From positions 15,635 to 79,634 of the forward strand of contig NW_005434478.1 of the NCBI RefSeq assembly GCF_000315625.1: a stretch of 64,000 nt of DNA. The letters run 5' to 3'. A program made the translations under genes and the position numbers. How positions within the stretch are numbered: the stretch's first letter is position 1; every line of letters starts with the position of its first letter. Origin of the DNA: Guillardia theta CCMP2712. Taxonomy: Eukaryota; Protista; Cryptophyta. Below the pieces are notes generated by a model. The model saw only the letters and a list, made by a program, of their open reading frames with translations, was not told where the DNA came from and searched no databases. This document shows, piece after piece, positions 8,811 to 13,284 of this stretch.

Positions 8811-10734
<1,924 letters not shown>

Positions 10735-10856
10735 TTCGGAGCCACAAACTTTTGTTGTACCCTACCTCTGTGGAATACCGATGGTACCACCCCACGTTTC
10801 TACAAGGAAAGGACCCCCTCCCCCTATATGGTGCGCATACGAGATGTTTTAAGATC

Positions 10857-10915
10857 TTACTCAAAGTTAAGTTAAAAATCAGTACAAGGACAATCAGGAG
10901 AGTAGAGGCTTTGAC
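10857..10915 (-). repeat. Dispersed ~60-bp element, copy A
   Basis: Reverse complement GTCAAAGCCTCTACTCTCCTGATTGTCCTTGTACTGATTTTTAACTTAACTTTGAGTAA; matches copies at 25844 and 36296. Confidence 0.85.
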
Positions 10916-13284
10916 GTTCATTCGTTGCTGTTTTTGTCGAGTATGAGCTCTGATCGTGGTAGAAAAACAACAAATTTCAGCATTTTGACTGAGTTTTGGC
11001 AATCCAACAAGCACTTGCACGCATTGGAACTGAACCGTATTCACGTTGGCGCACAAGCATTGACGTACGCCACAAACAAATGTGCAGCAAATTTCGCGAC
11101 GTATAGGAGATTCACTGTCAATACACGTCAGATCAAGCATATTAGGCTATGGGGCGATACAAATCATGTTTTCTCAGACAAAAAGAACGACGGAATGTTC
11201 GATATCAGAACAATGATCAATGGGTGGAAATTCAAATCGAAACGCAAATATTAGAAACAAACTGTTTTGGATTTCATCAATTACCATAGAATCATCCTCG
11301 GACTACAAGGTACAAATGACATGGTCACTTGGTCACGTGAACGATTGAGTATGAACTCAACAGTCACAAAGGAAACAGACGAAAGGACTTTGCGATGATC
11401 GATAACCACATGGTGCGGGCAACGTTATACACCAACATTATATGCTTTTGTTTTTTTAACACAAGGATGGTGGACACAAAAGAGACAGTTTGGCTCCGAT
11501 CAATAGTATACGTCGTCAGTTCGTCACAATTGACATCCACGTACTGTACGGTATGATGCGTGACGGGATGATTATTCAAGAATCATGGGACCTATTCCAC
11601 TTCAATGTAGAAATAAGTGACGGATCTTCATGAGATTCCGAAAGGCCAGTGAAACAACAAGGACAATCTCGAACAATCGAGCAGGTAGAGACTCAGACAG
11701 TGATTGCTTTATATCGATTGATCCAGGGCGAATCGTTTTGAAATGCGGGGTCGAGGTTGCCGATTGACAAGAAAAGAGTCAGATAAAGAGATATCGTTTT
11801 ACTCGCAAACAATACTACCATGAGTCGCATATTTCACTGAACCAGAAGAAGATTGAAGCTGAACTTCCCCGGTTGACACAAACGGCACTCCCCTCCCGCA
11901 CCGTTCGAGCCCGATGAGCAATGGGTATACGTTGTTGTCCCGATCTATCAGAGCTCATAGGATAGCGAGCCCAACACAGGAGTGGTCAACACTCGAAATG
12001 TGGACAGCACACAAGGATAGCCTCTACAACTATCCAGACGAAAGACAGTGATTCTCTAACGGCTACTTTGGTTCAGAAGTCGGACCCCTCCGGGACGGTT
12101 TCCCTATCAAGCACCGGTGGAGCTCTCCTTTCTGGTAGAAACAAGAACAGGAGCAGCGCATGGACCAAAGGGGCCATAGCGACGGCACGAGGCAGGAAGA
12201 CTCGTGCAAGCGAGGACCACTACCCCTGGGACTCCCACAGGGCTATAAAAGGATCAAGATCTTCATCTCTAGGTGGTCTGTCTTCCCTCCCTCTGTGTAC
12301 CACGCATTTCACTGTGTTGGTGTGGTTGCTGCAATAAAGCTTGATAATACTGTCTAGCACCATCTGTGTGATCCAGCGGAGGTTCTTTGAGCATTCGCTT
12401 GGCTAGTGTGCAACCCGTAAAGCTTCGGGGTGTAACATAAATTGGTAGCGAAGGTTGGTTGGAGCAGGTTGGAGCAGGTCAGGTGTGCCGTCTCCATCGG
12501 AGTCCACCTTGCGGGGGCTCACGGACCATTTCTTGGATAGGTAGAGATTCACAGACACAAGATCTGCTGGATATACCCCTCGAAGAGGCTCCCGACCTCT
12601 AGATAGCCATCCCCCGTGGAGGCTGCCTGGGAGAGCTGGGTGCCATCCCCGGGCTTCCTGTCCACATACACCGTGCTGTACCCCAGTAAATCCCTGTACC
12701 CGCAGATGATCTGGTGGTTTGCCGTGAACTTCCGTTACAGCAAGAGGAAATGCCAACACGACACTGAGTGACCGTTCATACCGGCTAATTTCGATGGCCT
12801 ATACTTCTATCACAGCAAGAGGAAATGGGGGATGGCAAGGATGACTACATTCACAAGAGGCAGGCTGTCGACCATTTCTTTGAAAAAATGAAGCGAAGAA
12901 GGAAGGGTTTGTCTGAACCAATAATCGCATACGGGGGGCATCTTTCAGTGCTAGTGGAAGGAATGAAAAGGCCGTACCTGTCAAATGGATCAAACAACGT
13001 TGCCGCAAAACTTTGAAGCGAGTTTTTGATGTTGATGAGAGACATACGACAGCAAACTGTCATCGATGTGGTACAAAACTACAAGATTTCAGACGCGTCC
13101 CGGTCCTCTGGGGTGGTGTATTTCATCTCAAGAGACGGGCCAGGTGAGAGGGTTGAAATGATGTGAGTCCACCAAATGTTTCAAAACTCGCTTTGTATCT
13201 CGTGACATCAATGCTGCACTGAATATTCTTTCTCGATACCAAGGGACAGAGAAAGAGACTTTCATGTGTGGACATCGTCACTGA
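10911..13284 (+). pseudogene. Fanzor1 (eukaryotic TnpB/Cas12-like RuvC nuclease) relic; frameshifted, N-terminally truncated, interrupted by an ~830-bp insertion
   Basis: Joined frames give ...AQALTYATNKCAANFATY...RQIKHIRLW...MINGW...DFINYHRIILGL; SLAPINSIRRQFVTIDIHVLYGMM...EISDG; FISIDPGR (RuvC-I D, 11720-22)...YRFTRKQYYHES; [insert]; KRKWGMARM/YIHKRQAVDHFF..PIIAYG/ASFSASGRNEKAVPVKWIKQRC..VFDVDERHTTANCHRCG (RuvC-II E, 13037-39); VRGLK*CESTKC..FVSRDINAALNI (RuvC-III D, 13204-06). Confidence 0.88.
11933..12758 (+). mobile_element. Insertion splitting the Fanzor relic; first half LTR-like
   Basis: Fanzor similarity stops near 11860-11930 and resumes near 12780. The segment begins TGTTG, ends CAACA, and contains TATAAAA (~12244) followed by AATAAA (~12333). 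No clear target-site duplication. Confidence 0.45.

Follow-up and report, generated by a model that had tools for sequence, protein, structure and literature searches.

A probable Fanzor1 fossil in Guillardia theta CCMP2712, broken by decay and by a retrotransposon insertion

Three eukaryotic Fanzor1 nucleases of solved structure are the closest described systems to the locus reported here: SpuFz1 from Spizellomyces punctatus (PDB 8GKH, 9CEU-9CEZ), PpFz1 from Parasitella parasitica (PDB 9CF0-9CF3), and GtFz1 (PDB 9CER-9CET; PMC10432273, PMC11423790). GtFz1 comes from the same species and the same genome as the stretch of 64,000 nucleotides that we analyzed (Guillardia theta CCMP2712, contig NW_005434478.1; hereafter the window). 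The omegaRNA of Fanzor loci overlaps the end of the open reading frame (ORF) and extends to the end of the element (PMC10432273), and the third catalytic position of GtFz1 is an asparagine, N658 (PMC11423790). An initial annotation of the window had placed a dead, intron-less Fanzor1 copy at 10911-13284, in a gap between two genes that it read as AAA and WD40. We find that positions 10916-13431 are best explained as the fossil of a compact Fanzor1 mobile unit, and we put the probability of this explanation as a whole at about 95%.

To place the relic among these systems, we relied on its intact relatives. The nearest of them is P0002, a protein of 670 amino acids (aa) encoded on a 2276-base contig from a different sample. 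A composite of the relic, with its frames joined by X at the breaks, was used for blastp and for a tree. The composite matched P0002 at E 7e-104, and in the tree the two formed a clade with 100/98 support, whose sister was lineage A of the G. theta genome (described below). P0002 passes the Pfam model PF07282 (Cas12f1-like TNB) with 30.9 bits against a cut-off of 26.3, and another intact relative reaches 30.6 bits. A hidden Markov model (HMM) profile of 22 intact relatives (alignment A1) matched SpuFz1 at E 3e-21, PpFz1 at E 4e-21, and GtFz1 at E 1e-9 in the PDB, with the IDPGR, VDE..TT..C..C, and RD.NAALNI blocks aligned with the matching Fanzor blocks. For the fold comparison, a model of P0002 was used in place of the relic. 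This AlphaFold model (mean predicted local distance difference test score 81, predicted template modeling score 0.79) was most similar to SpuFz1 (template modeling (TM) score 0.66-0.75, E 4e-22), followed by PpFz1 and GtFz1. Fanzor1 entries occupied ranks 1 to 7 of the Foldseek search, Fanzor2 came in at E 1.6e-3, and Cas12f and TnpB were far behind. Through its relatives, the relic is closer to the solved Fanzor1 proteins than to Fanzor2, TnpB, or Cas12, and it is encoded in a eukaryotic genome.

The domain order of SpuFz1 and PpFz1 is the same as that of the relic family, with IDPxR at RuvC-I, DExxT at RuvC-II, a CxxC...C zinc finger, and RD at RuvC-III, but at the structure level the two are only 12-16% identical to the P0002 model, and they are solved proteins, whereas the window copy is a pseudogene. 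SpuFz1 also resides in elements with inverted repeats, while none were found around the relic family, for which only the right end is defined. GtFz1 shares with the relic its species, genome, and Fanzor1 class, and with the relic family a compact locus without an evident transposase. It nevertheless belongs to a separate lineage by its profile match (only the E 1e-9 given above) and by its fold (TM 0.51-0.56 with the P0002 model), and the relic and its close relatives keep RD (13201-13206 in the relic) where GtFz1 has RN. Neither the asparagine at the third position nor the GtFz1 omegaRNA scaffold, which together mark the GtFz1 lineage, is present in the relic. In contrast to all of these, IS200/IS605 TnpB and Cas12f share with the relic family the RuvC and TNB core described by PF07282, but they are distant from the P0002 model (Foldseek E 1e-2 to 2e-5, TM 0.2-0.35), prokaryotic, smaller, and without the enlarged REC part of Fanzor1.

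When the A1 profile was searched against the whole 64-kb window, cut in six frames into 2598 segments from stop to stop, seven colinear pieces on the + strand matched in profile order between 10871 and 13281, with E values from 7e-17 to 3.5e-4; elsewhere in the window, no segment fell below E 2. The 5' half pieces covered HMM positions 83-183, 188-219, 240-281, 319-354, and 357-387, and the 3' half pieces covered positions 421-443 (weak), 439-468, 470-521, and 536-570. As a second test, which is the kind of frameshift-tolerant protein alignment that the initial annotation had proposed, we ran tblastn with an intact paralogue of ~640 aa (C72, lineage A) against 10500-13800. Its matches were all colinear and significant: residues 96-221 at E 1e-14, residues 366-413 at E 4e-10, and residues 502-566 together with 569-597 at E 9e-26. 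As had also been noted earlier, the gap that separates the AAA ATPase gene from the downstream minus-strand gene has no long ORF on its + strand.

Three-frame translation of the + strand recovered every motif that the initial annotation had read, each in its place and frame. In the 5' half these are LAPINSIRRQFVTID..LYG (11490-11552), ISDG (~11613), ISIDPGR, and FTRKQYYHES (11797-11826); in the 3' half they are KWGMAR (12819-12836), IIAYG/ASFSASGRNEKAVPVK (12920-12985), VDERHTT, CHRC, VRGLK*CESTKC (13144-13179), and SRDINAALNI. The RuvC-I aspartate codon, GAT at 11720-11722 in ISIDPGR, falls in the invariant IDPGR column (D396 of A1, D397 of P0002), which aligns with VIDPNK of SpuFz1. The RuvC-II glutamate codon, GAG at 13037-13039 in VDERHTT, encodes the invariant E (E554 of A1, E574 of P0002), and this motif corresponds to LDEYKTS of SpuFz1. 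The RuvC-III aspartate codon, GAC at 13204-13206 in SRDINAALNI, encodes a near-invariant D (D609 of A1, D629 of P0002), and here the counterparts are NRDMLSTCNM in SpuFz1 and NRNVAGAFNI in GtFz1. The relic therefore retains a split RuvC D-E-D triad, in order and on the conserved columns of the family. Between RuvC-II and RuvC-III lies the TNB zinc finger (CxxC ... CxxxxC) that had been read from the sequence, its first pair, CHRC (13058-13069), on an invariant cysteine column and its second pair, CESTKC (13162-13179; CsstkC in the profile), on invariant or near-invariant cysteine columns. A Fanzor profile match and a D/E/D triad at the RuvC catalytic positions, the two observations on which the proposed Fanzor1/TnpB identity had been staked, were thus both obtained.

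Nucleotide homology to the other relic copies spans 10916-11857, breaks off there, and is picked up again at 12790, dividing the relic into two halves on the + strand. The 5' half (10916-11857) contains the helical REC part, the WED strands, and RuvC-I, and corresponds to about residues 100-442 of P0002, internal deletions included. The 3' half (12790-13284) contains the RuvC helices, the IAYG strand, RuvC-II, the TNB zinc finger, RuvC-III, and the stop codon of the subfamily at 13282.

The subfamily to which the relic belongs has at least 12 copies in this genome, including the window copy. The further copies, at least 11 (C21, C115, C40, C24, C60, C55, C71, C41, C62, C35, and C129), are 70-90% identical to the window copy at the nucleotide level; each of them is a fragment in which open frames are short. 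The transposon family that the initial annotation had predicted is thus present in number, but the intact relatives it had thought possible were not found within the subfamily in a search that scored the best candidates. Three other Fanzor1 lineages are intact in the same genome. Lineage A is represented by C72 (~640 aa; L076:5487-7403) and C201 (594 aa). The C72 ORF had no identical or close entry among 5.8 billion proteins, its best match being a Hanusia phi relative at 44% identity, and public gene sets may not include it. Lineage B has at least eight near-identical intact ORFs of 644 aa with the canonical D-E-D triad (C1, C26, C30, C78, C14, and C6; L051-L060, L077); the tails of these copies are identical for 163 bases past the stop and then end abruptly at one and the same base, in ...TTTAGCTAATA. 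This lineage looks recently active and distinct from GtFz1. Lineage C has an open frame of 642/668 aa (C87, L075:5047-7521; C61, L080:4974-7512) and carries an intron (62 bases, GT..AG) that separates ...GLKFCRSS from the RuvC-III block.

Lineages A, B, and C resemble the relic in their clade, in their motifs, and in having one ORF followed by a tail of ~150 bases with a sharp right end. They differ from it in sequence (30-34% identity over the whole composite, ~48% for the best piece) and in being intact, whereas the copies of the relic subfamily seen in this genome are all broken. As for GtFz1, the first 32 bases of its omegaRNA scaffold matched exactly at C7:896451 (published as NW_005434667:896451, PMC10432273), and this scaffold start occurs only twice in the genome, on C7 and C345. 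The initial annotation had stated correctly that a G. theta Fanzor1 has been characterized, and GtFz1 is indeed encoded in this genome, but the relic, with its canonical D in place of N, is not a copy of it: sequence comparison assigns the relic subfamily to a lineage separate from GtFz1 and from the three intact lineages. We consider it improbable that the subfamily represents an undescribed D-E-D Fanzor1 lineage, from whose mostly privately damaged copies and 670-aa intact relative the ancestral protein and omegaRNA could be inferred and proved to be an active programmable nuclease with a target-adjacent motif of its own, or that its tail acts as a ghost guide for intact paralogues. More distant full-length relatives, at 25-30% identity, were seen on giant-virus contigs (IMG/VR; L082-L092; up to 344 kb), which accords with Fanzor1 being known from giant viruses of algae and with published surveys.

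Beyond the stop codon, the homology of the subfamily runs on for 147 bases to ~13431, ending ...GTCGATT.AAGGTT, and the flanks then diverge, so that the element reaches past the 13284 given initially. This conserved 3' noncoding tail (13285-13431, + strand, ...GTCGATTCAAGGTT) ends on the same sequence as the P0002 contig, a foreign relative at 67% identity. A 9-bp hairpin (GGAGGACTT/GAGTTTTCC) is kept in all five tails compared, that of the P0002 contig included, as is the block TTTTCCGAA.AACCC, and AGTTTTCCGAATAACCC is kept in four of the five. Conservation up to a shared right end fits the published arrangement of Fanzor omegaRNAs (PMC10432273), and the tail is a plausible candidate, on weak evidence, for the remnant of an omegaRNA scaffold. 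Its predicted fold was no better than that of shuffled sequences (z -1.6), and the consensus fold of the five sequences showed almost no compensatory changes.

Transcription of the locus was examined in two assembled RNA data sets, in which no contig of the relic was found, and in a raw RNA-seq run, in which the depth over the relic was at most 0.7 (~6% of the run read). The tail (13200-13407) likewise has no RNA contig, and its raw depth ranges from 0 to 0.7. RNA coverage was present on the downstream gene (from 13492), on the long terminal repeat (LTR) within the relic, and on a 57-base element at its 5' edge. The relic locus looks silent.

These data bear on a rival explanation in which the protein gene is dead but the tail (~13230-13431) is still transcribed as a ghost omegaRNA, is loaded by an intact paralogue, and takes the flank past 13431 as its guide. 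Such loci have been described in Spizellomyces punctatus (PMC10432273), intact Fanzor1 lineages exist in this genome to supply the protein, and the idea would suit the tail, whose conservation in several copies and in the P0002 contig breaks off sharply at the right end and includes the hairpin and the invariant block. We give it only a slim chance, since the tail shows neither RNA depth above 0.7 nor an RNA contig, its fold does not exceed that of shuffles, and compensatory change is almost nil. Nor was an intact protein of the same subfamily found that could load it; the other lineages are only ~35-48% identical and have different tails.

The reading frame of the window copy is interrupted in many places. 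The three stops reported initially are real: TAG at 11252-11254, which is not at that position in the C21 copy; TGA at 11765-11767, which is private, the C115 and C40 copies having TCA; and TGA at 13159-13161, in a conserved tryptophan codon whose TGG is kept by C24, C55, C71, and the P0002 contig, while C62 shares the TGA of the window copy. A fourth, TGA at 11396-11398, was added here and is followed by a frameshift before 11460. The several frameshifts that had been proposed number at least five (between 11396 and 11460, near 11630, and at 12835, 12939, and 13144). In contrast to these stops, the one at 13282 is common to the C40, C60, C41, and C35 copies and is therefore taken as the subfamily's own stop codon. 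The N-terminus is missing, as had been noted: in the alignment with P0002, residues 1 to ~105 are gone, and the HMM search did not find the Fanzor N-terminus anywhere in the 64-kb window, while the C115 and C21 copies still carry its coding sequence. Internal deletions removed parts of residues 237-262 and 305-375 (P0002 numbering). In other copies, the codon at 11765 is TCA, the 2-base insertion seen at 13144 is missing, and the base lost at 12939 is still in place; because the lesions of the window copy are mostly private, the subfamily appears to have spread while intact, with its copies decaying independently. Two stretches, 10973-11856 and 12419-13512, are each bridged by DNA contigs from what is probably the source sample, and the locus is thus not an obvious misassembly. 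With its open frame broken by stops, frameshifts, truncation, deletions, and an LTR, the relic is a pseudogene of the family rather than a working member. The copy is dead and functionless now, N-terminally truncated, and without an intron, in agreement with the initial description of a dead, intron-less copy.

The same lesions make it very unlikely that the locus is a live intron-containing gene with its stops and frameshifts hidden inside introns. Genes of G. theta do have introns, and intact lineage C carries its own just before RuvC-III, but the lesions at 12835, 12939, and 13144 are indels of 1-2 bases within conserved codons that leave no room for an intron and are not shifted in other copies. 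TGA stands in place of the conserved TGG at 13159, the N-terminus is absent from the whole window, the LTR of a retrotransposon lies in the middle of the gene, and there is no RNA coverage. Chance similarity in noncoding DNA is a negligible prospect, for although the motifs are short and single pieces stay below the Pfam cut-off, seven significant pieces stand in the right order on one strand and nowhere else in the 64 kb, with 70-90% nucleotide homology to at least 11 other copies and E 7e-104 to an intact relative.

The region between the two halves (11858-12789), which the initial annotation had included in the relic without remark, is an insertion rather than decayed Fanzor sequence and consists of a 492-base LTR, a primer-binding site, and filler. 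Between the Fanzor homology and the LTR lies a stretch of unique sequence (11858-11945, + strand) whose single match in the genome is itself; by a weak residue-level resemblance seen by eye, it is possibly badly decayed Fanzor coding sequence. The LTR (11946-12437, + strand) belongs to a young LTR retrotransposon family. At least 13 copies match it at 97-100% identity, arranged as pairs ~5.8 kb apart on C77 and C122. The family (11946-12459 in the window; L034-L044) is covered by RNA contigs. The high LTR identity marks the insertion as much younger than the relic. The LTR is followed by a stretch resembling a primer-binding site (12438-12459, + strand), and the match reaches 12459 only in 5' LTR copies. 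The remaining 330 bases (12460-12789) are single-copy filler that matched only itself: no source was found elsewhere in the genome or, for full elements, in the 1.5 kb internal to each LTR, and its ORFs had no Pfam match. A direct repeat of 25 bases with 88% identity joins the filler (12728-12752) to the Fanzor coding sequence (12803-12827) and may be a repair or template-switch scar.

In our reading, an intact unit measures ~2.3 kb, with an intron-less ORF of ~650-670 aa followed by a tail of ~150 bases that would specify the omegaRNA scaffold, and the subfamily spread as an active element whose copies later decayed independently. The window copy has lost the first ~430 bases of the unit, comprising the 5' untranslated region and ~80-100 codons, at a break that abuts the 57-base element. 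Besides several internal deletions, four stops and no fewer than five frameshifts break its reading frame, and ~40 codons between RuvC-I and RuvC-II have given way to part of a young LTR retrotransposon, made up of the LTR, the primer-binding site, and the 330-base filler.

Several points weigh against reading the relic as a Fanzor1 fossil. Single pieces of the relic stay below the threshold of PF07282, with 23.9 bits (the piece with CHRC) and 13.4 bits against 26.3, and phmmer searches of the PDB with the best piece and with the lineage A and lineage B ORFs returned nothing, a profile being needed. Because single pieces and paralogues are mostly matchless, the family assignment rests on profile and fold evidence obtained via intact relatives. 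No intact member of the relic subfamily was found in this assembly, which is gapped, by a search in which the best candidates were scored and which gives a lower bound. The RNA silence rests on ~6% of the raw run, and small RNAs are poorly sampled. Finally, it is from homology that the ancestral protein would have been an endonuclease cutting double-strand DNA under omegaRNA guidance, with the canonical D-E-D triad of RuvC and a CxxC...CxxxxC zinc finger. With these points included, the relic is still most probably a pseudogene of a Fanzor1/TnpB-type RuvC nuclease, a known family.

As such, the locus is a pseudogene of an ordinary kind: its family is known and has already been studied structurally and biochemically in this species. 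What is new in this analysis is the LTR insertion, the exact boundaries, the lineage assignment, the nearest intact relative, and the lack of transcription. For annotation, the relic is a fossil that would escape gene callers and should be masked as a transposon remnant and not treated as intergenic regulatory DNA. G. theta holds several Fanzor1 lineages beside GtFz1, one of them extinct here and known from relics only and others seemingly recently active, which is useful for the study of Fanzor evolution and for the choice of orthologues to test and leaves the known Fanzor mechanism unchanged.

The truncated 5' edge of the relic abuts a dispersed element of ~57 bases (TTACTCAAAGTTAAGTTAAAAATCAGTAC.AGGACAATCAGGAGAGTAGAGG; 10856-10915, + strand), which is outside the Fanzor unit. 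At least 256 candidate copies were counted in the genome, and the DNA word depth of the element, ~2294 compared with ~6 for single-copy sequence, points to several hundred copies. Its left edge is sharply conserved (TTTACTCAAAGTTAAGTT...), while its right side is variable. Other sites include L010-L020, L042, L075:7538-7579, and L078:4938-4982; in some contigs, copies follow one another head to tail, separated by 2-26 bases, and the element is present in RNA contigs at a depth of 25-56. The idea that it is the terminal inverted repeat of the transposon carrying the Fanzor was rejected. The element is near a Fanzor in only 3 of ~30 loci, it is absent around the intact copies on C72, C1, and C61, and its density near Fanzor loci resembles that near unrelated LTR loci. 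In addition, the place homologous to the element is occupied in the C115 relic by coding sequence for the Fanzor N-terminus. The element may represent the end of a transposon or a leader-like sequence that is transcribed.

Of the two neighboring genes, the upstream one, on the minus strand with its start codon at 10734, is an AAA ATPase gene as annotated initially, with Pfam matches to AAA and AAA_lid_3. The WD40 assignment of the downstream gene was supported in part: WD-like motifs (GSDDHSIKIWD) are visible, but two ORF pieces from it had no Pfam match at E 0.001. This minus-strand gene (13533-15400) is transcribed, and its RNA contigs begin at 13492-13512.

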